Positions 6,271 through 51,019 are shown, counted from the stretch's first letter. The stretch is 64,000 nt of DNA from Klebsormidium nitens (GCA_000708835.1 DF237126.1:97352-161351); one strand, 5' to 3'. Notes: generated from the sequence alone by a model not told the origin. Program-made: numbers and translations.

Positions 6271-7543
6271 ACTCCCCTCCTTCGGAGCCCCTGATTGTGA
6301 GAAGCTTGCCCTATAAAATAAGAGGACGAGATCAGCCGCATAAACAAAAACTTTCGTTGAGTCCAGGATCAATAGATTTGCGAGGTCAAAAAGGCACGCG
6401 CTTGACATAGGAGCAGCCAAAGCTGTGTGTGGTGGGTCAAAACGTAGTCTGCGTTTGATGTGTGGGGCGATGAGGCAGACACATTGTCTGGAAAGCTGTA
6501 AATAATATTTAAGCCGCTGTAATAGTCAGACACATTGTCTGCGTAGGACGTGGATGTAACTTGAGCAGTAGGGCAGCCACATAGCTGGTTCGAATGATTG
6601 ATCGCTTGTTGATAGGCCCTTCGGCGGTGAGGGGAGAGTCTTCGAGGCCTGCATAAGTTGAGCTTAAAGCTAAATTTGACATTGCAAAGACGATGAGATT
6701 TCTTAGATGTAGCAGTTTTCTACTTCACGCGCCCAATCCACGTGTGGCGCAGGGATAAGGCAAAGTCGATTCGATTGAGGGTGATCTGAAAAAGTTCGAA
6801 AGCTAGCTACAGATCTGTGAAACACTATTCTAACCGTCACCCCTCATGCTCCAACTTATTCCTGAGATGTCCTGGTATGGAGCTTGACCTGACCTTACCA
6901 CATGGCAGAAGTGACTCAATCATACATGCTGCATGTCAAGGCGCCTTCGATCAACCTACACCTTGTATACAGGCGGCATCATACGGACACGCCTGTCATC
7001 AGTGCACGAATGATGAAAGGGTGTTCAAATGTGGTCTTATAATGCAATGCGTACGCGCGCACTGCTCAACTTGGCATGGATATGTAACCACTTCGCTATA
7101 CAATGATGGTCTCAGTTTCTTCAAACACGCCATAATCATTCAAATAAGTGGATTTGATTGTACGTTTATGTATGAAAAGAGAGAGCTGTATGCCACAGCA
7201 ACAATTACACGGCTAGATCTACTGCAGATGATCTAGATATTCTGTCAAATTGCCATTGAGATCAACGATCGCGCCTATAACAACGAATCATTGGGCATGC
7301 ATTAATTCAGCGGAAACTCGGAACCCATCAACGATTCTGGTCATTCTGCGGAAGAGTCCTGCTGGTAAGTACTACATATCAAGTCTCAAATACATAACCA
7401 GTTATCATGCTATCGAAGGTTGCATCTTATAACCTGCGTTCAATGTTCAAACCCTGGTTGCTGACAGTCAATGACATAGAACATTTTTGAGCTGAGTCAG
7501 CTCTGGAGCATCTCCATGGCATACTATTCCGCTTTGATCAATT

Positions 7544-8599: not shown

Positions 8600-9820
8600 T
8601 GCGCCTGCACTTACTTTCAGGGCTGTCCTGCAATATGTAGCAACCTGGGTCCAAGGTCAAGATGGAGGAAACGTATTCCTGTCAAGATGCAGTCCCACAA
8701 GCGCAGACCGGCATGCACAATAATAGCGCTCAAGGTTCAGGCTTCCTAGCTCTGGCTGTACGTCTCTTGATCGATTGAGCTTGGAACCCTAATTTCTCCC
8801 CGTCGATCTGTTGTTCTACTTCCGACTATCTTGAGCCGTCAGATATGAATGAAATTGCGGCCTTCAAATCTATCGACGGCTTAGCAGTGAGCACTGAAGC
8901 TTTAACGGGCTCACAAACATCGACAGGCTCACGCTCTATCGTTCAGAGCTTTCTAGCCTCTAGAAGGAATGGACGGACGGAGCCATCCATCAACTTTGGA
9001 TGAAGCAGATACCGTATACCGATAATTAGATATTGAGAAGCAGGCCGCCAACTTCAAAGCTCGACGAGATTGAACAGTAGGGGAACAGTATAGCTTGACT
9101 CGACGCAAATTAAGATCCGACAGCGCATCAAATTCCGAAAAGAGGCCGGTCTTGGTTCTCACCACATCACGATTGAAGATCGACAAATGGTGTTGCGTCG
9201 ATGGTTAATACTTTTTTTTGCAGGAGACACAACAATCCGATCTTGTGCTGTGGCATGCGTATAGATCTTCCATGATTCCCATGATTTGCCTGATTCTTCG
9301 AATCCACACTGATCGGACATGTTCGAGTCCACATATGCTCATCTTGACCTCTTCTTAACGTCTTGTGTGTACGTGCCGCACTGATCCGATCATGGCTTGC
9401 TTAAGAGAAGCGACCATTGTCGAGTCTCATTCGATTCTCTTAGAGGATCAGAGCAGATTGGAGCATGCTTGGTCGCACATGAGCTTGCAGCACATGATTG
9501 ATTGAATGTGTTGATTGCTTCTGACTTTAAACTTAGCACATGCCGCTGCACCCTTTGAGCTTGCCCCTGCAAACGTTATTTCATAACCCAGATATGGTGT
9601 CATGGGGCATTCGTACCTTGCCATACGTCGTACGGCAATATGTGAAGTTGATCTGGAAACGAGAAAGAGGAGTGACTGCTTATGCTATCGTTGCTTCAGT
9701 GTCACAAATCATCTTCGAATCGTCTGATAACATCAAGACCTCATCAGGTACTAATCAGGGCTGAGTTTGCCTGCCCAACAAGGTTTTCTCGGGAAACAGC
9801 CCTCTTTTGGGCGGTCTTCC

Positions 9821-12800
9821 TCAAACATACCGGTAGTCTCCCATCACAAAGTCCTTGGGCCCCAGACTCGGCTTCACGAGGTGCCGATAATACCGCCCGT
9901 TCATGAGCCTGAGCCCCGCATATGCAACTTTGTCCTGCAACGACAGTTTCACCAATTCGTCTCGTAACCAGGCCTCCATGAGCCCCTGGAAGGCCTTGGT
10001 GACCGGACGGATGTAAGGGGGATCCCTCTGCTGGTAGAGGACGCCCGCTGACATCAGAGCGCGCGCTACTTCGTCCTCGAGGAACTCGCTCGCGGCCAAA
10101 TTGACGTAGTTCACCTGGAGATGGGTGATATAGCTTCCTTAGTCGCTATTATGCGGATTCGTTTTTGCTGACCGGATCAGACGCCGTGTTCAGTTTAAGC
10201 AGAGCAACAAAAACAGGCCATCCAAACCGGCTCGGTAAACCGTCCTTCCGACCTTTCTAAAGAGAGACCGACCGGAGCAGACAGCGTATCGAAGCAGACC
10301 GCGGTGACAGGGCCCCCGTTAGTCTGAAAGAGCTCGAAAAAGTGGTGAAGCGACAGCGGCTGATTTCTGGATCTCGCCTCATGCTAGGAAGGTCGTCCAC
10401 TGTCTGGCTGCAATCTCCCCTGAAGAAATCTCCAACGAAAACTCGCACGAGCAATCAAGACCTACCTTGAACGAGAATATCTCCATGATTAAAAGACTTG
10501 AACCTGCCAAGAGACCATCTGGTTCGCCACCACATTCGAAGTGAAGCAGGCGTAGGCTTCATCGCTTGAATGCTTTTGAAGGGTACTCACGATTTGGAGC
10601 TGAATCTCTGGGATCCACTTTACAACTCTAAAATAATTATTGAAATCTTGAGACCCACTTCTTTATGTTGAGATTTAAGCTTTCTGGAACGGGCCCCTCG
10701 GCCCAAAGGAACAGACGCGTCAAGAAGCGAGGTAGAAAAAGAAGAGATTCAACGAAAAAGCCGGGTGGAGCGAAAGACGATCAAGCAAAAGGTAACTCTC
10801 GTAAGAAAGAAGAACGAAGAGTATCAAAAGGAAAACATGGCTCACCCCATAACGCGCTCGCTGCAGCGCCCGGAGGAAGTCGAGAACTTGGAGCGTCGCC
10901 CAGCGGACCCATCGCACGTCGTCCCATCGCCGAATAAGCCCCCGGGCCCAGCTGCGCCGCGCCGTCCACGCCTCCCGCCCCTTTTCCGCAACTCTGCGCA
11001 CCACGTCCCGCATCGCCGGTCTGAAACTCTCCCGCTCTAGTTCGTCCAGGTACTCGACCACGGTCCTGTCAAAATGCGACCCCTCATCGGATGAGTCCCT
11101 CACCGCTGACGTCAGCCCCGCCGCACGCTCGGCCCACAGCGAATGGAACTCCGCCAAGTGGCGCGCGTTCAGGCCCACCGCGTCGTTCAACCGGGCCCAC
11201 TGCGCGGGGGAAACCAACCGGGGCACCAAGTGCACCGAGGCCTCTACTGCCGTCCAGCCAAAGTACTCGGAGGGCTTCACCCGGGCTTCGAGGAACTTCT
11301 GCTCGGTGTCGAAGTCATTCGAATAGTGCCCGTCGGAAGTGGTCAGTATAACGGGCAGCGTTTTGGCGCGCTCCGTCAACTGCAAGATTAACTGGTCGTG
11401 GAATTGCGCGCCGGACACCACGTGGCGTAACCGTTTCCGGCGGCTGTGCCCGAGCCCCGGCGCCTGCCGCAGCAACTCGATCCCGTGAATAACTAGTTTG
11501 GGCTCAAATGTCCCCGCCTCCGCAGCCGCTGACAGCAGATCTATCATTAACACGCTCCATGCGGTTGCCGCGTCCGCCGCCCCCCGCCCCGGCCCCTGGC
11601 TCCGCCACTCCTCTTGCACCTCTAGTACTTGACGCGCCAAATGAAGCGCATTCAGCGCCAGCCCGATTTGGTTCGGCTCGTGGTACTGTTTCTTTGCCAC
11701 GGCGGGGACGTTAACCAGAGCTTCTAACCATAACCGCCCTGTGTTTGGGTCCGGTTCCCTCCGGAACTGCAACTTTTTGACCACCAACTCCGGTCCGCTG
11801 TCTGATGCGTCCTTTTTGTCCGGGTCCGTCACTTCGAAGATCTCATAAGTGCTCGCTAACTCAGCATAAGCTGGCCCCGCAACGCTCTTGAGCCGCCGGA
11901 AGCTCATAGAGCTGTCGGGGGAGCGGACGCTGCCGTCTGAAAGGTGGCGTTCGAGGGCGGCGTCCACGTGGCGCCTCCACGTGAGCGCCCAGAAGATGTC
12001 TTCCATCTTGATCTTGTTCCGCCGGATTCCTTCCTTCACAACGGAAAGAAGCCCGAGCTCAAGATTGGTGCGGAGAGCTCTCTGATATCGGGGCTGAAAA
12101 ACGGCAGGACCCGGGAAGCTTTCGGAGTCCGGGGACATCGACGCTCCGTCGACGGCGTGCTCTTTGCTACGGGGTTCCTCTGTCTGCGAAGAACTGCTTG
12201 ACAGGTGCGCCAGTCCTGCTCTTGAGGCACTGCTCTCGTTGGAGGGGCTCGACGCGGCTTCCGGGTAAAGTCGGTTGAGCCAGGGGGGAGAAGGGCTAGC
12301 GTCCGAGCGGGGGGTAAGGAGTGCAGCGTAGAGGTCAACATGCGCAACTGCATGTGGAGGACTGGCCCAGTCCTTCAACACCGCTGCAAGGAACGAATAC
12401 TCTGCTTTGAGAAGGCAGTTTCGGGTCACGAAAGCTTTTGAGGGACTGGTTGTTGCTAGAATTCTACGATGAGCGAAACGAAGGTCGTAACTTGGGGAAA
12501 ACCCGCAATGTTCACCGATGCTTTTCAGGAGTCAGAAGTACAGCCATGGGAAAAGGCCCTGAAATACCTTGACCTTATCGGGTGCAGACAATGAAAAGGG
12601 ACAGGGGCGCATGCCGCAGAACGGAAGTATCACAGAATAAGGGCAATTCATTTTCTGATTTGAATTACCTGAGTGTGACCAGGAGGCAACAACAAATATG
12701 GTCTCCCTGAACACCACCGATGAGATGCAGACATGACAAACCTTTCTAACATCTTTGGTCAGGCTGAACTGACATATGAATCCCAGAAAAGCCACCTTGA

Positions 12801-22000: not shown

Positions 22001-23387
22001 TACTTGGCAGAACTGCAACATATCCAGACCCAAGGGGTCGAAAGAACCTGATCAAAGCCCATCAATGAAAGCACGTTCACCAATCTTATGAAGCACGTTC
22101 ACCAATCTTATGCAGCACGACCCACACGACAGACCACCTTCCAAATATGCTGTCAGTAATAGAAGCAGGTATGGAACTTTACCAGCATCATCAAAAGGTG
22201 GCGGTGGGGAGTCTCCTCGCGCGGCTTCAAACCGGAACTTGTCAGCGTTGCTGTCAATGCACGGATCATCCACATTAGAATGCAGGCAAAACCTTGCCTA
22301 CCTTCAATCTAAGCCTGCCGCGCTCATCAAAGGATAGACTTGCATTACAGCTTTCGAAAGCATATAAAAGCATACAAAAACTGGCATACCACCAGCTTGC
22401 TAAGAGGATGCACGCTTGAGGAATTACTGATACCTGTCGGACCCTTCCTTCAGCTCCCTCCCACTCTGACGATTGCTGCTAAATAATCTTACATCAATAC
22501 TACCTTACTATTGAATTCGGATGGATGGAGAAGATGGCTCCATAGAGGAAGGGGTAACTTGATTCAATGGCCTCCTATCACTTGAATTGATTTCACACTG
22601 CGGGATTCACCAGTGGTTGTAGCTACCAATGGAGCTTGCAATTTCACTAGACGATTGAAAGCGGGGTAAAATCGGCTCATTACTTGAAGCTGGTGAAAGG
22701 CGGGCAATATCTGGGAGCCCTTGAAAAGGAAGGACTGCGATGACTTGTATGTTTGGTATATGATCGACCTCGACAATCCAACGATGCTGGGATCTCGATA
22801 ATTGGAGGCCTTCTGACGTTTCTTGCTGCATTGAGCGTGTTGTTGGCCTCCAGGGAGGCAGATTGCTGCCCTGCTCATGCTGGCCACATATGCAGCCCTC
22901 CACCTTCGTTGCCCTTTCTTGGCACCAGGATGCCCCAGATGTCCGCTGGAAAACCGCGCGACTAGGACCGAAGGACGCATGACTAGCCCTCTGAAAACCA
23001 GCGGCTCCTCAGAATGGTAAACAACTGACGATTTTGCAGCTGTTTAGCCAGTTATCTATGGGGACATTTGCCAGCAGCATGACCCTTTCCTGGCCGTGGC
23101 TGCTCGAACTTGATTAGGCAAAGAGTACCATTCTCGGAGACTTGGATCACAAAAACAAGGTAGCCATCTAGCATGAAGCCTGCGCGTCTTTACCTCCTGC
23201 CCCCTGATCGCCTTCCACCTCCATCGCGCTCATCCTCGCGCCTGCGCTTGCCAGGTGGCGACCGGCGTCTCTCCCTTTCTCTGAAAGGCGGACTCGGGCT
23301 CTTCTCTCGAGCCCGCTTGGTATCTCTTTCTCTATCCCGCCGGTCATTAACAGCCCGGTCCTCCCTTGCGACAGCCCCGCTCCCCAT
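16005..23387 (-). CDS. SE: SERRATE/ARS2 RNA effector (miRNA processing, cap-binding complex); multi-exon
   Basis: LQSYKQFLLTLPDDISPAEGERR|YEEYK, LLDALLTYLWLVHFVDYYG, KYGWKYGCGAQGCT, LFHGPDFVLKHLKAKHP (C2H2 zinc finger), VLIPVPGAGPLGPFVPAPPDVA and terminal YVDLDAPSDEVPVLDYRSL* (stop at 16005-16007). The true start may lie slightly upstream of 23387. Confidence 0.95.
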
Positions 23388-23867
23388 CCTTCTCGTTGCA
23401 GACCCCTATAATCCCCCTCACTGTCAGCACACAGAAGGGCGCCCGCACGATCCCCCCTTCTTGAAAAGCAAGCGTGGAAAGAGAACTTTCCCGAAATTTT
23501 CAACGAGTATGAGAGCTCGGGTTAGGATAGTCGAAGGCTGTCCGCTAACCCTTTGAATCCACATCAGCGCTTCATGCATGAGACAAGCTAGTAGGAACCG
23601 GTTAACCCGAATGTTAAACCAACACAGCAACCCGCTTCCTTGGTGTTCCTTTGATGAGGAGCTTACTAGTTGTATCACCTTCCTCCCGCACATCTTGTGC
23701 AAGCAGTAGCCCTGAAGCCCACGCTTGGCGCTTGAACCCCACCATCACACAGATCTGCTGTGAGCTTTTGTCATTGAAGTGCAGCAGCAGTTGCCATAGT
23801 CGGGACTGCAAGGTGGTGGAGTCTTTGATTCAAAGGACTTCATACTGTGGGAGCACAACCAGGGGCA

Positions 23868-26800
23868 ATGGCGCCTTCGAAAGCTGGTCTGATTGTGACC
23901 ACCACGCAAAGTCTGCCGTTCTCAGTGATTGGCAATTTTCAGGCACAGTTCAGTCTAGGCAGCGCCGTCCATGTGGTGACACAAGCCGGACAGCTAGGTG
24001 AGCTTTCCTGCAATTGTGAGCAGCAAGACATATTAGGGTTTGTTTCCCGCCTTTCTTGTCTTAGGGTGGTGGCAAGCCGCACCTTGAATCCATGGTCGCA
24101 CCTAGGGTTTCTTATTTCGTGCACCAGGTTCTCACAATTTGTCTCATCAACACACCCTGCTTGATGTGCGTCTGTGAATGAACTCACTCCTGGTTCCCCA
24201 GCTTGTTGACTCTGAAGTCACTTCTGCGATCCCTTTCATCGATCGCCTGAGTATTCATCTCAGATGCCGCTAGGCTCATGAGATGGTGGTTGACAAGTCC
24301 GTTTAAAGCATCTCTGGTTTTCTCTCAGGTACCTTGGATGCGGAGCCATCCTCCTTTGGCGCAGTCCTGTCCCTCTCGGATGTTCCTGGCCACCACACAG
24401 ACGCCTTCTTGGCGGAGCTCTCTAGGGTGCTCCAGCCGGGGGGCACCTTGCAGCTGCAAGAGCCGGTGGCCCGCCGCAAAGCATCCCAGGATGAAGCAAA
24501 GGTGCTTAAACACCACCCCGCAAAGTTGAAAAGTTAGGGGCTGAAAGCACAAGAGCTGCTATGCTAGCAGGTTCTTCAGTTTGAGCGCGGTTGTTCTGGT
24601 GTCAAGGGTGCTGTCACTCACAAGTCAGCCCCTGGAACTGCAGATTTCTGAGCAGCGTGTGTTGTTTTGCGGTTGGTATTCTTCCCGGTCTTCATTAAGG
24701 AGTGGTGGCAAGTACGGAGACTGTTACTGTCAGCACATGCTGACTCCTGCTTAAGCTTGCAATCCAGCCTGTTTCAAATCCAACCAAACCTTCACTTTAG
24801 GCGAGTGGGGAGATCACCATGCTTTGCAGTTAGTACCTTACTGGCCATGATCATGTTTATCGAAATGGCACATTCTAGGACTTTTCTTTAAAACAGGATT
24901 GGGTTGAGCAGAATCTTTCGGGCCCTGACTAATTCTTGATGACCCATCCTTGTTGCAGAAGCTTGGGGGGGCGCTTGTATCCAGGCTGCAAACTCAGGCA
25001 GACGTTGAGAGGCTCCTCCTACTGGCGGGCTTCTCAGCAAAGGAGAACATCCCCGCGCTACCAGAGGGGGGCCTGGCCAAGCAGTGGACTGGCATCACAC
25101 CCGCGTCCATAGGTTCGATACAAGGGCCTCTCGTACAGCCTTTTGCGGTGAGTTCAACAAGAGTGGTCATGGGAGTATGTTCCTTACAAGAATGGTCGTT
25201 GGAGTACGTTCCTTGACAGAGTTGCTACTTTGTCAAAGAGCTTCTTCGAACTCGTGGAATCGCCTGTTTCCTCTACACTGGATAGTCAATGAAAGAGTAT
25301 TGTGCAGCATTATCTTGATAACCTGTGTGCCGCCGTGCAGGTGAAAGTACAGAAGCCTCAGTGGAGCACAGGGACGTCGTTTGCCCTGAAGAAAAAGGTC
25401 GCAAAGTCAGGTGCGCAGTCTATCTTGTGGGAGGCTGACCACATTCAATCGAGGATTGCAATTGTAACCGCCCGTGTGCTCAGGTCCAGACTCAACGATG
25501 GGGTTTCATCATGCCGCAGGCAGCAAAGAACGTGTTTTGTCGGTCATAATTGCAATATCCATTCCATAGCTATGCTCATGGTTTTCGTTTCATAGCAGCT
25601 TTTAGAAGCATTCTCGGGCTCCGGAAAGTCTCTCTTCTCAGTTACTTCGCTTATCACTATGTCGGCAGAGCTCTCGTCTGTGTTGGATAGACAACTTGGT
25701 TTCCTGTTCCTCGATCTGGTCTCCGAGTTCCCCGCGCCAACCTTTCCCTCCGTCCCTGTAGCCGCTTCTGCAGCACCCAACGGCGCCGCCAAAGCGCCCG
25801 TGCGCCTCTCCGCCACCGACATGGATGACGTCATCATGGCCCCACAGCCCCCTGCGCCCGCAGTCCCGAGCACGAGCGGGCAGAGCAGTGTGTGGAAGAT
25901 GACGATGGATGACGACGATGCCGAGCTGGTGGACGAGGATGCGCTGCTGACAGAGGAGGACATGGTGCGGCCGGCGCTGCCAAATAACCCCGTCAGTGAG
26001 TGACCGCTCGCGAGTTTTTAGTTCACCTGTCTTTGCTTGTTATCCCTTGCGGACTTTCCTTGAGGAGTTTTGTGTTTTACGAGGTACTTTCAGGGTGGAT
26101 TTGGGGCTCAGGTTGCTGAGCGGTACTTGCTAGGGTGGAGGCAAAGGTGGGACTGCCGCTCTTCCATTCAGGGTTTAGCGAGTCCTCGCAGCTCAGGGGC
26201 CTCTCCTCTGGCAGAGAAGTCCCTGCTGACTAAGGCATCTCTCCGAACGAATCCGAGACGAAACTCGTATTCAAACGGTCCATAAACGGTCTGGCATGCG
26301 TCTAAACCCTGGGGTCTTGAGTTGAGGCGCAGAAGGCCTGTGAATCTTTTTGGGTCGTCTCCTCTGCTCGAGATCTCAACGTGTTCCCGTCCGACTTGAT
26401 CAAAGACCGAGACTCTCAGTGTTTCAGACGACGGCCCTCAGCTCCTCCGGATCCAGAGTTAGAGCACCTTTCGCAAGTTCTTGTCATTTGAACTTCGCTG
26501 TTGTTACAGGCAGACTGCGGGTGATAAAAACCTTGCTTCTCATGATCCTGACATCTTTTGGTTGTATGCAGCTGACGACTGCGGGGCGTCTGGGCGCAAG
26601 GCGTGCAAGAATTGCACCTGCGGGCGGGCCGAGATGGAGGAAGCGGACCCCAAGACAACTGTGAAGGCCGTGCTGACCAGCGACCTGCTGGAGAACCCGC
26701 AGTCAGCATGTGGAAGCGTGAGCACCTTTTTGAATTTATCCGCCCTGCCGTCATGCTTGGCGACCTGTTATCTAGCGTTTGCATGCTTGATTGGGTATGG

Positions 26801-40334: not shown

Positions 40335-40888
40335 GAGTGCTCAACCTTCAAGTCAAAATTCCACAAATGTGAAGCAGATCAACGTGAGATTAACAATGGA
40401 TAGGGGAACCGACCATAATCGAGTTCGAGCATGAGTTTGTGGCCAACTGCTTCACTCCTGAAGCTCCTAGAGGGTTGTCAATTGGGTGAACGGATCCAAC
40501 GTTTGTGGACTCATTCAGGTGACCCTTCAGAAGGCTGTGTTCAGCGAACAAACGTCCTACTTCGACCTCTCCTTAGGCTATACTAGGCACCGACGACCGT
40601 CACAGCGAAGGACCTTGATCTGCAGGGCGCCGGCCGGCCCCATGTACCTGTACCCTGTATTATAGGCTGTATATGCCTGGGTACGGTAGTAGGGGGACCC
40701 CGGACCAGAGGTTCTAGCAATTTTTCGCCGGCCGTGCATTCTGCACGCCGGGCTCCGCCCGGGCGTGCAGAGCTGGCTCCCCGGCGTGCACGCTCGGGGC
40801 CCGGGATAAAAAATATTGTACAGGTCGGGGCGTTTTTGTGAGCGAAAATGGGGGGTCGAGGTCGCCGGAGGCGGCCCCACGGGGTCCT

Positions 40889-40930
40889 CCGGGGCGAAGC
40901 CCCGGGGCCAGGGGGTCCGAAAGGACCCCC
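40889..40930. other. Two perfect GC hairpins in the transposon left subterminal region
   Basis: CCGGGGC-GAA-GCCCCGG (40889-40905) and GGGGGTCC-GAAA-GGACCCCC (40911-40930). Confidence 0.8.
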
Positions 40931-41487
40931 GAAACTTGTCGGAAGTTGCTTGTCAACGTGCAGCGCGTGTACTCGCGCTGATAGGGCGCGATGCGCACTC
41001 ACATTTGTAGTTGTGTCGCATGATGTCGCATTAGACTCGTGTAATGAGGACAGTAGATCAACGGTCGCAGGAGCACGTCATTGCTTTGGCCCTGCTATGA
41101 CACGCTCCCGGCCGTCCATCGGACTGTGCCTAGTGGCAATAAGCCTGGTGGGCTGATTACAGTGCAACACTGAGGTAGTGCAACATAGGTACTCTTGACT
41201 GCCACTGCCACTGCCATGAAGCTGCTATTGTCGTCCCAATTGTAGGGCCTACTTTCATAATGCGCAACAACGCTGATTGGAAATATCATCACTATTGCAA
41301 ATCAGGATAGTAATCTGTAAAGCTAAATATGTAAATCCAGCGACAGTGACTCAGGTCATTTTAACCTTTCATAATGAATCATCGCTCAATTTCTCGACTA
41401 TCTTTATCAATGGCTTTGATTAGTGCCTCAATAAATGAGCAATCCCCAAAATTGCTAACAAAATTGTTTATCGTACATAAATATTAA

Positions 41488-44400
41488 TCAACCTTTTGGG
41501 CATCTACACTGTCCTACAGGTTTACCGCAACCTTTTCTACAATGCTTCTTAACACCCTTGCCGCCCCTATTATTCTTTGCCGGAAGAGAAGGGAGCGATT
41601 GACAACCATGAATCTTGGATGTTGTGATTGTGAGCGACGGGTGGAAGAGAGGGTGTGCAAAACCGGCCCCCATGGGCACGGCTGCAAACGGTGAGTAATT
41701 TGCGGTGGATGGGAAGTGAGGGTTTTGAGGGAAGGTGGGCGGGTACGAATGGATGCCACCAGGAACCACCGGGTACATGGTGGTTGAAGGGGCATAGCTG
41801 AAATGCTGCAAGGAAATGGAGTTGTGAGCGGCGAGGGCGTTAAGGGAGTCTTTCCGAATAAATTCTTGGACCAAGCCCTTCTCGTACTTTTTCAGAAGAA
41901 CGATATTCTTCTGATGAATCGCGTTGTCTGCCCCTGAAACCTGGGAGGCTGTCAAAGCAGCCCTTTGATTCCACTCGTGACACATATTCACCCAATTGGT
42001 GGAGGATTTGGAAGAGTGCCTAGAGTAAAGCTCTGTGAACAATCGGATCTCAGCAGGGGTGGTGACTGGGCGGATCAGCTCGCGAAGCGCTGGCCGTCGT
42101 ACGCCATGTTTCTTAATGAACGGAAGCCGCCCATGTCTCTTCACCTCTTCGCCGGACCCTTGCAGGTGTCGAACGTCTCCACCAGACTGTTGGGTGGATC
42201 CGCCTAGCCCACCTGCTTGACCAAAAACTCACAAAACTTTAGGCTTCAATGCTGGGATAAGGCTTAACAGACTCCTCGCCAGGTCTTGAATTGCTAGATG
42301 CCATCCAAGAGAAACAGATTTACTGCCGCAACTGCAACCTGGACGTGTGATCCACAAATTCGAAGACGGAGGGCAGCACTGCGTGAGTTTCATTAGAAGA
42401 ACATCCGCAAGATCGAGGGATTGCGTGAAAACTGTCTTGAAGAGGATCTGCTAAAGCCCAACTCCAAACTCTTGACTCTTCCCTCCTTACCTAGCAAAGA
42501 GCCCTGGGGCGGGCCTCCACTGGTTTGCGGGAAAGGTGCACGTTGCTCCTCCAATCCTGAAAAAAAGATTGGGACGCCGCTGACATGAACTTCGTTTTGC
42601 TCTCCTGCAATCAGCGCTTATGAAAGAGACCGCATGTCATCTTGCCGTTTTATAACAAGATTATATGTACGGTCGGGGTGACACTTGAGTTTCCTTCTTG
42701 TTCAAAAGTGGAAGCAATTGGACAGATCGGAGTAGCTGGGATGATAAAAAGGACGACTCGGAACTTCAAACAACTCAGTCAGCGATTTGCAACGATTAAA
42801 GAGAGTCTGCAACTCACTTGATGCGGAGCTGGACGGAGCGAAACCTTCTTGGTCGACCCGTTTTCTTTTTGATGCTGCAGTTTTCAAGATAAAACGTCAA
42901 AAGAGTCGCTTACCACATACCTTATGACAACTCGGGCCACAGTACCACTGCTGCAATCAATTCTGTTAAACAACAAAAGCCTCATGTCGATTGGATTGCA
43001 ACCAGAGTGCTCATAAGCTTTCAACGAACATACAGATTCGAGACTCTTGTGTTCAGCAGGTGAGAGACAAAGAGAAGAGGTATTACCAAGCTTTTCCCGG
43101 CGGAACACACGAGCTGCAACTGGCAAGGCGCTACCAGGCAGCCGGCTATCCGCACTCTGCCCTCCCCATTGAGCCACGGCCGGCGCGATTGAAGGCTGGC
43201 CGCCCTGGGAAGTGGGACTGAAGAATCCGGGTTGCTCTCCCCACGGTGTTGCTGTCGGCACAAGTGGAGGCGAACCGCCCTGGGATGGGCCCGTGTGGAA
43301 GGGAACGGACTGGCTTCCCGGATGCGGCGCGGCGCGGAAGTTGAAGCTTGCCTGCCCGTTTTTTGAGGGGGCAAAGGGAGAGACGGGCTGGCCCCCCGGC
43401 TGAGGTGCGGCGCGGAAGGAGGGAGGCTGCCCGTTTTGGGGGGGGACAAAGAGATGGACCGGCAAAGCCCCCCGCTGCGGCCCGGCGCGGAAGTCGGGAG
43501 GCTGCTCGTTTTGGGGAGCTGCCAAAGGAGGGGCGGGCTGGCCCCAAAGCTGCGGCGCAGCGCAGAATTCGGGAGGCTTCCCGTTTTAGGGGGGGGCGGA
43601 AACGAGGGGCGAACTGGCCCCCCACCTGCGACGTGGCGCCGACGTCAACAGGCTGCCCGTTTTGGGAGGGGCGAAGTGAGGGGCGAACTGGGCCCCCAGC
43701 TGCGATGCGGCGCTGACGTCAGCAGGCTGCCCGTTCTGGAGGGGGCGAAGTGAGGGGCGAACTGGCCCCCCAGCTGCGATGCGGCGCTGACGTCAGCAGG
43801 CTGTCCGTTTTGGGCAGCGGCTAAGCAAGGGGCGAGCCCATCGCTCCGCTGCGGCGCGGCGCTGTCAACGGGAGCCTGCTCGTTCCCAGGGGAGACGAAG
43901 CGAGGAGGGGGCTGGCCCCCCAACTGCGGGGCCGGCACGACCGGAGGCGGTCCGCTCTGAGAAGGGGGGCAGAGCTGACTGGCCTGCCCCCACAGTTGCG
44001 CTGCAAAGGGCGTGACTGAAGGCGGTCCGCTTTGCTGGGGGGCGTGTGCGCGCTGCTCCTCAGGTCCTAGCGCATGTTGGGCAGGCCCATTTGCGTCTGC
44101 AAGAGGGCCACACTTCACTTAGCTAACATTCGCCAGGATAATACGGCTCAACGAATCCAAGGCATTCTTTGCTTCAAGTCGAGCAACGTCTAGTAAAGCA
44201 AAAGCAAAAGCTACAACGTGACCAAGTGCGCAATAGAACTCCAGTCCACTCGAAGCTCAAGAAGCTTACGTGTTTGTGTGCACAAAATGACTAAGTGACT
44301 GATTGTCCAAAACTTTTTCTCGGAATCTACTTGATCTCAAAATGAAAGGAAGCTTAAGTAGGAAGCGCACCACCCAGATGCACTATAACGTGCATCTTGC

Positions 44401-47400
44401 CAGGGACATGAAAAGAGCATGGGCTGCCTACCCTGTTGGGCCGTGCGCACCGGCGCAGGCTGTTCGTTCTGGCCCGGGGGAACGAAGAAGGGCGCCGGCG
44501 ACGAGGCGCACGCGGTTGCTGGTTGCCCAATCTGGCCTGGGCGGTCGAAGGAGGGCTCCGGCGGCGAGGGGCGCGCAGCTGCAGGCTCTCTGTTTTGGCC
44601 CGGGGGGGGGGAAGAGGGCCCCGCTTGCGGGGCGCACACAGCCGTGGCAGCTTGCTTTCGAGACGCTTCTTTGGCAGGCCCGGCCGCGCCTGCAAATTGC
44701 ACGATAGATTCTGAACAACCAACCAACGTGAAGACAAGACTAAAGGACGACAAAAGCAAGCTAAAGTCTGGGACCAAGCAACACCCCGATTGTGCAAGCA
44801 AGAACCCCGACTTTGAGGAGCAGTCTTAGTTGAACACTGTAGGCGGGCATGTCAACCAGTTGCCAAATTTTGTTAATCTCAAATGCTCACCTATCCCTGA
44901 ATTCAAAAACCTGCATCAACTTTGCACCTTTCCTTTCAAGACGGAATCACAGCACTCGTTCTCACGTTGTCAATTCAAACACTCAACATATCAAACGAAA
45001 CTGCCTGATTGCATGTCTGCTGATGATCAACAATCTGATGAGCAACCTGTTGCGGATGCTGAGCTTACAACTCTCACCCCCCCTTCTAGTTACTTGCTTT
45101 GGTGCAGACAAGCTTCCTACTTAATCTGGTTGCCTAACAGCCCCTAAATGGCAAGAATTGACAAGATTGACTTGACATTTACAACAGAGAAGTAACCAGT
45201 CTCGTTCTAAGCCTTGTCTTCTCGCCTTCAAAAGGTAATCCGAATGACGGTGGGTAGCTCACCAGCGGCCTGCTTGCTTCTCAGTTCTTGCTCGCTCAGG
45301 AGATTCTCGACGAAAACAGCTTCCTGATCCAGGAAACCAGCTTCGTCCTCCTCATCTCCCTGAGACACCCCTGCCCGCAAGACGGCGGGAGCCGCATGGA
45401 CGCCGAAGCGCTCCTGAGTAGGCGGAGCGCGCTGCCATTCGGGACAGGGGTTTGGCCACCCCATATCTGCGCACGTGTTCTGCATCGCCTCTAGCAGCCA
45501 GTGGTCGAACATTCCCCAGTCTTTTGCCCCCTTGCTGCGTACGGCGCACTCGTAGTTCCAGCGGTACTTGAAGAGGGCGATGAGAGCCCCCGCAAGCTCG
45601 GGGGAGTAGTTCCCCCCGCCAAGCAGCGCGTTGAGGTGGCGGTGATAGCCCTCAAGCGAGGAGCAACCCCGTACACCGATGTAGCGGGGCATACAGCCAG
45701 GAGCACTGACGGGGATGTACATCTCATCCACGTTGAGCGGATCTGCAAGTGACGACAAAACCGTTAGATATGCAGGTCTACTTTGTTACTTCCCTTTGAG
45801 CAGCACATAAGCATTGCAAGCTTGCTCGATCAGGATTCAAGTTTCAATCACAAAGGACGATTGCTTTTCTAAAGGCAGCAGCGTCAGTATGCAACGAGCT
45901 CAAATAGGGAAGTTTGACAAGCACAAGCGACAAGCTTTCAGCAGGAAACACATTCCGGAAGCATACAGATAAGCAGATTGTGGACAGCAGATGATGTCAA
46001 GGACACTATACAAAGCTTACCACTCAACAAACCCTCTTGCATGAGCTGGAGCTGCAGGTTGTGCACGCGCTGCACTTCTTCGGTGACGAGAGGGTCACCA
46101 TTGATGGCGCATATTCCTCCTGCATACTTCTTCATCACCGCTTCAACTCCGATGACCAGCTCCTGCGGGGCAGGGATGGTGTGCCGGCAGCGCGCTCGCC
46201 AATAGCTTGCAGGCTTAGCTGCCACCTCAGCCTGCGTCCACTTCCGCCTTCCCGGACCTCCATCCAGGAGAAACTCGCGCAGAGCCCTCTTGTCCGGCTG
46301 GTGGATCTTGAACATCGCGCTGGAGTAGTCCCGGCAAAAGTCAGCTGCACAAGAAGGCCAAGCCCTCTCGTTAGAGCAGTCTTTAATTAGATCTTGCAGA
46401 TGGCCTGAAGTAGCTCGTGTTGCGCACAATTCTTGTACAACCTAGAAAGCGCACAATTCTTGTACAACATGAGAAGGCAATTGAATCCAGAAGTGCCACA
46501 CAATCTGATGAAAAACTGCATACTTAAGGCAGCCAAATTGACATTCACACATACACAGAACCAGCCACAACAGGTTTGGTTGTACACCTGTTGTTCACCT
46601 GTTGTTTTTTTCGCAATCTTCCGACTGAAATTCATTAATATAGGCAGCAAATTACAGGTCTAAGTTGGAAGTCCTCCCGCGTCCTAAGCACTTGACACGA
46701 TTGACCCCTTCACTTTTCTCACCTTTGAGAGAGTGGGCATCTGGAATGGTCTCGAAAACCCGCCGCAGAACATGTGTGGCATCTTCCAGAACACGACTGA
46801 GGCTGGGGATGGCCCCGTACAGCTGGGCAGCCACTGTCCGGGAGTTGTCAACCCACATGAACTTGGGCAGCTGCAATCAGGAAGGTAGAACACTTTGGAT
46901 CAGACTTGGCAAACTAGCAGCATGAGAAGACACGTGCAAAATGACACCAATCATGCCACCTCGACCCTTACTACCTGAGCAACTGATTGCATGATTCTCG
47001 TATGCACACTGGCATAGAAAGGAACACTGCTTGGCATGAGCCTCGAGTTGTTGCAAACAAGAGGAACCTCAATTCAACATCTAGATTGAAGGCTTTTTTG
47101 AACGCACCTGATACCCAAGCTCATCATAACGCTTGAGCACATCTTGAATGCCAGGGGCGTACTCGTCAAAGGATGTATCCCCCACGGCCCACTGACCCAC
47201 GATCTGCGACCACTCGTTCATGACGGAGTAGATGGCTGCATAGTCTTTGCGCCCATCTGCTGAGCGGATCCGCGAGGCCGCTTGGAAAGTGTGATCCCCC
47301 CGCCAGAACATTCCGTCAACCGCAGCCAGGTGGCGTTCAAGGAACGCAAGCCGCGAAGTCAGGGACGCAAGGATGACGCCTGCATGAAGAAAAGGTGCGG

Positions 47401-49074
47401 GGTGAGGCTTGCAGTTAGAATATTTCCTGATCTCACGGCACATCAAACTGCAAACATCAAGCAGAAGCTAACACTGACAAGAAAGTGACACGTAACTACA
47501 AGGCCAGCATCAAGCAATGCTTCTTCATGCGAAAGGAAGGGCAAACATACTGTAGACAGCATTTGTGCAAGAGAAGATCAGAGAAAGCATCCAACAAGCT
47601 ACTGCTAAAAAAGAGCATTGTTCCTCCAGTCACCACAGATTGGAAAGCACCTTCAGTACAAACGACTGTCAACTTTGGTTTCCAAGAACAATGATGAACA
47701 AACCTGCTATCCAGGAGGTTGACGGTATCCAACCCCTGTACCCGTCCTTGTCACCGTACTCCCCAAAGTCAGCAGGGGCAGGGGGAGTCTGCTGAACAGC
47801 TCCAGGAAACAGGAGCGAACCACCCTGCTCTTGTCGCCGCCTAGCGCGCGCTGCAGCATACTGGATGTATGTACACTTATGCTGCGTAAACGTGCGCATG
47901 TGCGCTTCACGGACCATTCTCTGCTGGTCAGCAATAGACGCCCCGCTAACAACGTTGCGGACCATGGTGTCCAGAAGACTGCGCTCAATGGCCCCCCCTC
48001 GAGTGAACACGATTGCAAGCTGCTCCAAGACAGCTGGCTGCTTTTGCCGTATCTGGTCCAGCACGCCCTCATCATGAGAGCGGAACTGGTAGGCCTTGCC
48101 ACCATTTGCTGCAAGACAAGCAACCCCTTGGTAAGCAGATTGCCGCTTAAGCAGAACAGAGGCATGTATATCTGGTTTTGCTTGCAGATTAGATGCAGAC
48201 TTCGAAGCTATAATGAATGCTCAAGGAAATGACAATGCATTGTCCAGCTTGACCAGACTTCAAACATTGGGTAATTGTCAGGAACCACAGAGGAACCACA
48301 GTGCAATAGAAGTGTTGATGTAGCTTTAACAGCTTGAATGGTGGAATGCGTGCCCAGCTATGAAATGTCAAAGAGCTGTGTCAGTGTGCCACCACAATCC
48401 CAGCATTAGAGTAGCTCAATTGCGGAATATGCAGGTCTCAGCAGGGCCAGCGTTTCGATGCATACTTCAAAACGCAGCCGCAGCCAACTTTCCAACACAA
48501 AATAGTATGACGTGTACTCACCTGGGCAACCCTCTCCCACCTTCTTGCCCTTCCCACACCGAAAAACTTTGCTGAACAGGAAAGCAGGCGCGTTTGCACT
48601 GCACACTCTCCTGATCTTGTCAATCGACCAGCCGTCATGACAGACCCTGTCGACCTTTCCACACTTGGGACAGTAGATGATGGGGATCAGCTCTCCAAAA
48701 AAGAATTGCCAGAAGACAAAGTAAACGACTTTGCCAGCCAAGTGGAAGTGATTGGGTTTAAGACAATCTTGGCCCCTGCTAGCTTGCACGGCATTGGGGT
48801 ATTCCCTTTTCATGCTTGGCCAGTACCGAGGGTCAGGAACCTGATCTTTTGATGGTCCTTTCTTGGGGTCTATGTCAGGGATTATCCAAGGGGGGAGTGA
48901 CTTCTTGTCTTTCCAGTCGGGAGGTGGCATCACTTGGCTGTGACACCAGGCTGCCAAATTCTTTGCACAAACTTCGTCCTCACTTCTTGGATCGTAGGTT
49001 GCGGCTCCCGCAGCTTCAACCGGGCCAGGCGCCATGGTTCGGTTGGTACCTGTCATGGAGCTCCTCCTTGCCAA
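41488..49074 (-). CDS. Large multi-exon DDE transposase (DUF6729-like by recalled motifs) with Pro/Gly/Gln repeat region and C-terminal Cys cluster; net -1 frameshift in the repeat exon
   Basis: N-terminal IIYCPKC...GW...RRV...FRC; putative catalytic D in GDHTF (about 47295), D in MWVDN (about 46848), DxxH in LEDATHVLRR (about 46783), E in RGCSSLEGYHRHLN (about 45652), RWN motif; C-terminal PVTTPAEIRLF...NWVNMCHEWN and KHCRKGCGKPVGQCRCP. The exon junctions I checked from 45270 downstream join in phase 1. Confidence 0.82.
43194..44095. repeat. GC-rich minisatellite, about 12 units of about 75 bp (25-aa QNGQP..AAPQ.GGQ peptide); three further 63-bp related units at about 44458-44645
   Basis: Unit anchors (GGCTGCCCGTTTTG-like) at 43194, 43269, 43350, 43425, 43500, 43575, 43651, 43725, 43799, 43874, 43946, 44021. 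Confidence 0.9.
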
Positions 49075-49351
49075 AACAAAGAGAAGCCTGCAAGCCAGGC
49101 TGATCGACGTTCAAATCATCAAACCTTAACCAAGGCTCAGACCTACCTGTTCTGAACCCTGGTTTCTGCTAACCAGGCTTGCGGCTCGCCGAAGCGGAAC
49201 GGAATTGGAGCTATCTGGTCGCCAGCGCTGTCACCCCCCAGATCAGCGCAGCCTTCTGCACCTAATGACCCCCCCAGAACAATTTGTTAGCAGCTGCCAT
49301 TTCCGCCGCTCGATCGTGTGCCACAGTGTAATATCGCACGGGCGCTAAATG

Positions 49352-49465
49352 ATCGTTAGTCCGACTTTGCGCACTACTTTCTGGCTTGTCGTGGCTCGTT
49401 AGTCGGACTTGCAGCAACCAGATGGCACGTTAGTCCGACTTCAAATCCAAAGTCGGACTAACGAT
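49352..49465. repeat. Four copies of CGTTAGTC(C/G)GACTT bounded by a perfect 17-bp inverted repeat, upstream of the transposase
   Basis: Copies at 49354, 49397, 49428 and inverted at 49450-49463. ATCGTTAGTCCGACTTT (49352-49368) / AAAGTCGGACTAACGAT (49449-49465). Confidence 0.85.
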
Positions 49466-51019
49466 GCACCACAGAGCTGCATTCGACCCCGGCCTGCGGC
49501 CGCTCGCCCCAAAGCTCTCGACCGGGAGTTACCGGCCTGCATGGCCGGCATTCATGCCGGCCCCATCACCCCCCCATCATAATCCGCGAACCCCAGATAT
49601 CATCGATAGCCTGGCCGTAAGCCAATGCATATTGGCCGGACCGGCCCAGATCTTCCCTTCGGCCAGTGACCAGTCCCAGATTTCGATTCATACCGATACG
49701 TATAGCCACCGACTCTGACGGCCTCAGCTCAAGTTGCTTCTATCCACGGTTGTTGGTCGTTCAATTCTTATCGAACGGTCATTTTGGCTACAAACTGTAT
49801 GTAAGCTTTTACAGGGGTTGTAAGTTTGCTCGGGGCTCAAGCGAAGAAGGAATTGGCCCGATATTCCGTCAGCCCGAGATATAAACGGAGAGGTCTGCAA
49901 AAGCTTCAATGGTCATTTCTGAGTCACTTGCTGAGCCGCATCTTCGAAGTCATGACTACCGGGCATTGGGTTTAGACCCCTGGGAATTCCTGCACGCTAA
50001 CCTGCACGCCGGGCTGCCTGCAGACAATCACCCGGGCGTGCTATGCACGCCAATCTGCACGCCGCTAGAACCACTGCCCCGGACGTCCAAGAGTCAAGAC
50101 TCAGGAGAGAGGCGAAGCTTCAAACCCAATTCTGATAGGTAACGCATGGACCACCTCGTAGGCAGTTGCATGCATACGGCTGCGCACCTACCTATTGACC
50201 ATGGTACGGTACATTGGTAGTGCGGGCGTTACACAGTAAGTTACAGGGATCATGCAGGATGTAAACCCAGCGACTTTTCTCGCAGAAGCGCTGTGCGCAT
50301 ATGCAGGTTGCGTTTTGAACGGCCGCAGAATCCAATCATGGTTCAATTAATTATGGGTCGGCCGGAGCGAACCACCTAGGTAATATCCTCCTGAGTCCAG
50401 CCTGAGTCCTCGTCTCATGCATGTTGCCATCGCTGGCATGCCTGAATTCGGCTGCATAATCGGCGTTTGAAAAGAGAACATCGGCCGCCATTGCTTGAAA
50501 ACTTGTTGAACGCTTTGATGGGGCAGAATGCAGAAGTAAAAACAATTAATATGTTATATCAGATGCTTGTTTTGCTCTAAGCATGCACGGTACAGAAAAC
50601 AGTATGAAAGCCGTTGATGCTTTACAGCGCAGATATGTAAGCATACTCGGCTCAAAACCTAGTGATCTCAGTCACTGTGTACAAATTGGTGAAGCTTTCT
50701 GCTGCAGCTTGCTTTTGCCATCAATCAAGTTGGATGCCTTGATCGTTGAAAGGATCATTGCCAAGACTCCCACACATAACATTTTCAATCTCATACGAAA
50801 GCAGAACAAGCATGGACAGCCCTCGACCTCTTGACCAAAAGAAGTGGCGGACAAAATGCAAGTTCAACAAACAAACCAGCCATTGCTTAGGCTAGTGGAA
50901 GAGATGGCAACAAGAAACCCTACCATCATCCTTTATTGACTTAATTGACTTGACTGCTCTCGTTACTGCCGGTACACAAAAGGGTAACACTCTGCATCGG
51001 TGGTTGGGTCTTCATCCGC

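Follow-up and report, generated by a model that had tools for sequence, protein, structure and literature searches.

The locus studied here lies on scaffold DF237126.1 of Klebsormidium nitens NIES-2285 (GCA_000708835.1), in a stretch of 64,000 nucleotides (scaffold positions 97352-161351) which we call the window and from whose first letter all coordinates are counted. In this window, an element of 9,371 bp, end to end, occupies an intergenic position; 11.4 kb of sequence surrounding it match the scaffold with 100% identity. It lies upstream of a CASTOR/POLLUX-like channel gene, 372 bp from the annotated start, and 936 bp past the 3′ end of another gene. Its two ends are 13-bp terminal inverted repeats (TIRs), CAGAGGTTCTAGC on the plus strand at 40706-40718 and, read on the minus strand at 50064-50076, CAGTGGTTCTAGC; 12 of the 13 positions are identical. 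Directly outside both TIRs are the copies of an 8-bp target-site duplication (TSD), CCCCGGAC, at 40698-40705 and 50077-50084, which match exactly at all eight positions. We scanned all position pairs between 38-42 kb and 48-53 kb (4 kb × 5 kb, 2 × 10^7 pairs) for 13-nt inverted repeats, one mismatch being allowed, that abut an exact 8-bp direct repeat, and the pair at 40706/50076 was the sole match, against none in 40 shuffles and an analytic expectation of about 2 × 10^-4. A preliminary description, made from the sequence alone, had reported a complete, bounded element with these ends, and both the sequence and the scan bear this out.

Short repeats are located immediately inside the TIRs. 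On the left they fall within 40733-40795, with TGCACGCC at 40742 and GGCGTGCA at 40762 and 40783, and on the right they occur as TGCACGC(C) at 49991, 50003, 50044 and 50056, within 49991-50063. The 8-mer GGCGTGCA/TGCACGCC has six occurrences in the element, all of them at most 100 bp from an end (40742, 40762 and 40783; 50003, 50044 and 50056), and the majority share one orientation relative to their end. This arrangement fits the usual picture of subterminal transposase-binding repeats, and we regard them as putative sites of this kind.

Between the ends there is a single gene, as the preliminary description had stated; it is on the minus strand, has multiple exons and is the annotated KFL_001770280 (42491-48813), a hypothetical protein of 1031 amino acids, P0151. 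When P0151 was mapped onto the DNA, it fell into eleven exact blocks from 48813 to 42494, with exons 1 to 6 at 48813-48523, 48109-47702, 47377-47108, 46870-46724, 46345-46022 and 45743-45261, and exons 7 to 11 at 44687-44433, 44097-43717, 43548-43135, 42874-42818 and 42556-42494. Both ends of the gene are probably incomplete in the annotated model. The frame of the first exon continues without a stop to 49074 and has an ATG at 49056, and relatives, including the open reading frame of the transcript-derived relative P0155, align beyond the annotated start; the true start is probably upstream. On the 3′ side of the annotated stop, an open frame of 218 codons with a Cys-rich tail (41488-42144, minus strand) is conserved in each of the four other K. 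nitens copies described below (62-79% identity of amino acids), and it is also recognizable in a K. nitens family of 45% identity, in Pleodorina and in two wider relatives. Judged from this conservation, it is probably a C-terminal exon or domain of the transposase that was overlooked by the annotation.

The protein, of more than 1,000 residues, is ordered as follows: a zinc-ribbon-like segment, the helical DUF6729 region, the DDE core, the DxxH motif, the all-helical insertion of about 145 residues, proline-rich repeats and the Cys-rich C-terminal domain. The zinc-ribbon-like segment (CPxC...C...C) precedes the DUF6729 region, which corresponds to residues 65-191 and to 47828-48621 on the minus strand, spanning an intron. 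The match of P0151 to DUF6729 (PF20499) is weak, with 15.7 bits against the 27-bit cut-off of Pfam (E = 0.012), and single exons gave only a weak DUF6729 match. The domain is above the threshold in relatives (32.6 bits in P0014; best E = 2.4 × 10^-8), is listed in 9 of 13 family members at E up to 1, and is found as precomputed matches on P0153, P0154 and P0162. The preliminary description had linked this protein to DUF6729; the link is borne out, with a match below threshold in this copy, but at the N-terminal residues and not over the core that bears the motifs. Those motifs themselves (GDHTF, WVDN, LEDATHxxRR and others) had been read correctly. A literature search found no mention of DUF6729. 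The region probably serves in binding of the ends. Further downstream, the proline-rich, low-complexity region (43135-44687, minus strand) is built from 75-nt and 63-nt tandem repeats.

In the catalytic part, Pfam gave no match. At E up to 1, neither zf-BED nor Dimer_Tnp_hAT (PF05699) nor any other hAT domain was found in the exon pieces, in the full-length relative P0001 or in the 13 members, in agreement with the earlier failure to recognize BED-finger or hAT dimerization motifs. FAR1/WRKY and SWIM were not matched in Pfam either. At the same level of E there was no match to MULE (PF10551) or Transposase_mut (PF00872), none to THAP or Tnp_P_element, and none to the KDZ transposase or CxC cysteine-cluster domains in any of the 13 members. 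The Pfam check proposed with the preliminary description has therefore returned DUF6729, below threshold in this copy, and none of the hAT dimerization, MULE, KDZ and P domains. A profile search of the sequences in the Protein Data Bank (PDB) yielded nothing relevant, so that the tie to known transposases comes only from comparison of folds.

The fold was predicted with AlphaFold2 for residues 1-650 of P0151, using an alignment of 65 sequences. The resulting model has a predicted local distance difference test (pLDDT) score of 85.3 and a predicted template modelling (pTM) score of 0.84. It contains strands at 257-263, which includes D261, at 281-286 and at 292-298, a helix at 303-320, a strand at 327-330 followed by D331, and a strand at 349-352 followed by a helix with D353-x-x-H356. 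An all-helical insertion (372-500) comes next, and then a helix at 509-520 that carries E511. The predicted DDE RNase H-like core and its all-helical insertion, with the RWN motif, are encoded by exons 3 to 6 (45261-47377, minus strand). Both this order of the strands and the structural matches given below identify P0151, on the model, as a DDE transposase with an RNase H-like core and the triad D261, D331 and E511. An RNase H fold had been proposed for testing in this way, and in the model the first Asp is on strand 1, the second after strand 4 and the Glu on the helix following the insertion. The three candidate catalytic residues are encoded at 47296-47294 (D261), 46849-46847 (D331) and 45653-45651 (E511) on the minus strand; the positions first assigned to them, 47295, 46848 and 45652, are correct. 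The LEDATH motif corresponds to D353 and H356, and the DxxH is located 22 residues past the second Asp. Conservation was counted in the same alignment, using only the sequences that cover each position, and was nearly complete: D261 in 19/19, D331 in 20/20, D353 in 36/36, H356 in 35/36, E511 in 60/60, H514 in 59/60 and N543 in 58/61.

The best structural match of the model was ISCth4, an IS256 transposase (PDB 6XG8 and 6XGX), with a Foldseek E-value of 4.6 × 10^-7 and a VIA Z of 13.8 (277 residues aligned, root-mean-square deviation 3.5). A wide search independent of Foldseek gave a Z of 13.1, with 315 of 401 residues aligned over positions 24-552 of the model. Hermes, a hAT transposase, was second (Z = 10.2 and 9.9, about 240 residues aligned), followed by retroviral integrase cores (about 9), P element (8.9), Transib (7.6) and RAG1 (6.8). 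The integrase cores align from residue 254 of the model to their residue 57, which places D261 opposite the integrase D64, provided that the first seven aligned residues contain no gap. According to this comparison of a model with solved structures, the nearest solved relative of P0151 is of the IS256/Mutator type and not of the hAT type.

Other properties agree with this placement. In MULE and IS256 transposases, the first Asp stands in D-x-T-F-K, [C/D]xxH follows about 20 residues past the second Asp, and the Glu stands in E-G/S-x-H/N-x-x-L-N/K; the motif layout of P0151 resembles this one. The match to ISCth4 extends over the DDE core and the helical insertion as well as N-terminal parts. 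The TSDs of MULEs are 8-11 bp (PMC6446971), and those of IS256 are 8-9 bp, so that the 8-bp TSD found here is inside both ranges. The protein differs from these groups in that it has no sequence match to the MULE, Transposase_mut, FAR1/WRKY, SWIM or NCBIfam IS256 models, its N-terminal region consists of a zinc ribbon and DUF6729, and its D-to-E spacing of about 180 residues is above that of typical MULE/IS256 enzymes. P element and THAP9 resemble it in the length of the TSD (7-8 bp), in a motif of the DxxH type and in having an insertion domain in the DDE core, but P0151 lacks the THAP and Tnp_P_element domains and its structural score to P element is below those to ISCth4 and Hermes. The TSD of Zisupton, 8 bp, has the same length as that of the element, and the KDZ and CxC domains of that group were absent, as described above. 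Zisupton/KDZ transposons have been reported in Chlamydomonas (PMC8226300).

From these results we consider it probable that the element, apparently autonomous, is a class II DNA transposon of the cut-and-paste kind with an IS256/Mutator-like DDE transposase of the [C/D]xxH group, and not a hAT element. In such a mechanism, the transposase would bind the GGCGTGCA repeats beside the 13-bp inverted ends, pair the two ends and excise the element. Insertion would then proceed via cuts staggered by 8 bp, and repair of these cuts would yield the CCCCGGAC duplication. The element may still be active at the present day.

Four further loci of K. nitens (L002-L005) carry copies with 70-85% nucleotide identity. 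Compared with these copies over approximately 750 codons, the ratio of nonsynonymous to synonymous substitutions (dN/dS) was 0.09-0.12, and dS was 0.66-2.1. Such values of dS, together with a dN/dS of about 0.1, indicate at the level of sequence that the copies are old lineages kept by purifying selection on the protein and not recent siblings. The element had been described as probably young; the copies compared are far apart, none of them shares its ends, and only the perfect TSD and the open frames point in that direction. On the left, similarity to the other K. nitens copies breaks off sharply roughly 100 bp in from the end of the element; on the right, it does so at a distance of about 570 bp or more. 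The left boundary coincides with the outer edge of a GC-rich 125-bp block with two hairpins (40808-40934, minus strand), which is 92-94% identical among the K. nitens copies, above the conservation of the coding sequence. Rfam gave no credible RNA for this block, and its folding was modest (z = -1.6 and -1.9). Perfect palindromes with CGTTAGTCCGACTT as their unit form a cluster at 49352-49473, on the 5′ side of the transposase gene, and copy L002 has a similar palindrome in the corresponding position (9623-9672).

Some of the neighborhoods of the other copies have peculiarities of their own. Genes with a Prim-Pol domain are located a few kb downstream of two other K. nitens copies (L002, 23676-26795; L006, 15687-17537), which may be a coincidence or may reflect a shared larger element. 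At L003 (K. nitens DF237294.1), most of the protein P0152, which GenBank lists as 'acetamidase/formamidase', is a copy of the transposase; the true FmdA_AmdA gene is the next one, and the name seems to stem from annotation carry-over or from a chimeric model. Beside copy P0001, a gene model at L004 (5706-9452) has Pfam matches to the PIF/Harbinger transposase and overlaps the region homologous to the C-terminal frame; it probably reflects either the nested insertion of a Harbinger element or the merging of gene models.

The transposase belongs to an unannotated, algae-wide family. A library-wide phmmer search of cluster representatives with the sixth exon found 315 proteins (E up to 0.001). 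Relatives with a named source were from K. nitens (six genes), Nannochloris, Pleodorina, Nephroselmis, Trebouxia, Myrmecia, Apatococcus and a chytrid, all annotated as "hypothetical", and the relatives span at least four green-algal classes. Word-indexed homology searches recovered few of them past K. nitens, Nannochloris and Pleodorina. The relative of Pleodorina starrii (L009) is inside two nested pairs of inverted repeats, the outer of 143 nt with 97% identity (7197-7339 and 25376-25518) and the inner of 239 nt with 99% identity (9765-10003 and 23165-23403), with no obvious TSD. Lineages of the family may have very different ends.

In many distant relatives, similarity is limited to the portion that begins at the DxxH motif, and a 3′-5′ exonuclease domain (DNA_pol_A_exo1) lies upstream of it. 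This fusion to the helical half (DxxH ... E..H ... RWN) is seen in P0056, P0105, P0106, P0069, P0033 and P0109. Among the exonuclease-fused relatives, one has a SAP domain; one is from the chytrid Siphonaria and the others are metagenomic. In the predicted structure of residues 150-700 of P0056 (pLDDT 79.6), the exonuclease fold is followed by a disordered linker, beyond which there are only helices; no RNase H-like sheet bearing the two aspartates stands between the exonuclease and the helical half.

Several observations weigh against an IS256/Mutator-like transposon. The equivalents of D353, H356, E511 and H514 are conserved in 90% or more of the sheet-less, exonuclease-fused relatives. On the models, there are two possibilities: the four residues also make up a structural metal site, or the fused proteins are derived and non-catalytic. 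E511 may also, or instead, hold such a metal site. Because the sheet-less relatives keep both E511/H514 and D353/H356, our confidence in E511 as a catalytic residue only is slightly lowered. The lead of ISCth4 over Hermes, about 3 Z units, is clear and not overwhelming. No IS256 model in NCBIfam was matched, and the only matches there were non-significant ones, to ISL3/ISLre2 and to a zinc domain (E = 9.6 for the zinc domain). The TIRs are 13 bp long and begin with CAG like hAT ends, whereas those of MULEs are mostly tens to hundreds of bp. Furthermore, the expectation that other copies would share the ends found no support in the loci and metagenomes covered: none of the four other K. nitens copies (L002-L005) has the TIRs of the element, no TIR and TSD pair was found around the two K. 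nitens copies on long contigs, and pairs at eight related loci (L002, L003, L006, L007, L009, L010, L011 and L012) were at chance level only. A scan of the JGI metagenomes for both ends gave 94 matches, all of which we attribute to chance because they showed no blastn or tblastn similarity to the element and their number was in line with expectation. Since only one copy has recognizable ends, mobility would have to be read from a single insertion.

The alternative that survives best leaves the mechanism as it is and concerns the lineage, namely that the element belongs to Novosib, a superfamily that already has a name. We take this to be a serious possibility that falls short of being probable, and the comparison is by description only. 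The TSD of Novosib is 8 bp, the same length as here. Both are found in green-algal hosts and have a rare, poorly characterized transposase. Novosib was first described from a green alga (cited in PMC5751038), and relatives of P0151 occur in volvocine algae (Pleodorina). The Repbase entry, Novosib-1_CR, is from Chlamydomonas. Its RNase H-like domain is without a Pfam model (PMC5751038), which fits the blank in Pfam on the core of P0151, and it is listed among superfamilies of the MULE/P/hAT/Kolobok type with Archaeplastida as the main host (bioRxiv 10.1101/2021.09.26.461848). Against this, a 2021 survey seeded with Novosib transposases found only 10 proteins from 2 phyla in 2 kingdoms, a host range that cannot hold both Chlorophyta and Streptophyta, though GenBank has six K. 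nitens proteins of the family and such proteins were already public when the survey was made; this is a weak point. Published Novosib surveys report no streptophyte hosts. Moreover, Muszewska et al. were unable to verify that Novosib has an RNase H fold, while the fold is clear in the model of P0151.

The opposite view, which we advance tentatively and hold to be less than probable, is that the element is the first example bounded by ends and a TSD of an unnamed DDE lineage of superfamily rank, sister to Mutator/IS256 and distinct from Novosib. This lineage would be spread in streptophyte, chlorophycean, trebouxiophycean and prasinophyte algae, and its helical half (DxxH ... E..H ... RWN) would be reused without the catalytic sheet in fusions with 3′-5′ exonucleases of the WRN/RNase D type, in a chytrid fungus and in metagenome organisms.

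It is unlikely that the element is a very divergent hAT transposon, in which the ends are the true signal and the enzyme has lost any recognizable BED and dimerization motifs. The TIRs of hAT elements begin with (C/T)A(G/A), and the start CAGAG is that of hobo, Hermes and Tol2. The element resembles them in its 8-bp TSD, its short CAG(A/T)G TIRs, its short subterminal repeats and the helical insertion in its DDE core, and Hermes is the second-best structure. The ends had accordingly been called hAT-like; the TSD length and the CAG-type TIRs are as described, but they are not unique to hAT, since 8 bp is also within the Mutator/IS256 range. The enzyme argues otherwise, for it has neither the BED finger nor the C-terminal dimerization domain, no hAT domain was matched in any member at E up to 1 and there is no similarity at the sequence level. 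In addition, ISCth4 is 3-4 Z units above Hermes with more residues aligned, including N-terminal parts. In P0151, 180 residues separate the D from the E, as compared with over 300 in Hermes, the insertion domain is far shorter than that of hAT, and the motif is DxxH and not CxxH. Gulliver of Chlamydomonas was also considered as a relative and was rejected, since published work classes it as a true hAT element.

A composite structure, in which the TIRs, the TSD and the outer segments of about 100 bp and 570 bp are a short non-autonomous hAT-like element that holds an unrelated transposase gene or element, is very unlikely in our judgment. The sharp stop of similarity to the other K. nitens copies inside both ends would suit it, as would the restriction of these ends to a single copy. 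However, no inner TIR, which would be a sign of nesting, and no TSD was found where the similarity stops, the non-coding ends are expected to be unalignable at a dS of 0.66-2.1, and neither the rest of the window nor the loci nor the metagenomes contained the outer segments. That chance ends surround a stationary, possibly domesticated gene is extremely unlikely, for although the low dN/dS and the other copies without ends would suit host genes, the result of the boundary scan (both the expectation and the shuffles), the confinement of the subterminal 8-mers to the two ends and the presence of multiple diverged copies per genome stand against it.

With the interpretation as an IS256/Mutator-like transposon, several hundred database proteins now listed as "hypothetical" or DUF6729 would gain a function as transposases, a fold and a catalytic triad. 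The element supplies defined ends, subterminal repeats and a target-site length, which are usually missing for such families, and the defined ends allow the annotation of copies and of miniature inverted-repeat transposable elements as well as the design of an activity assay. It also indicates that short CAG-type ends and an 8-bp TSD are insufficient to call an element hAT. If the family is Novosib, an obscure superfamily would gain a confident model of an RNase H-like fold that one published study had been unable to verify, and if it is distinct from Novosib, a deep branch would be added beside Mutator/IS256.

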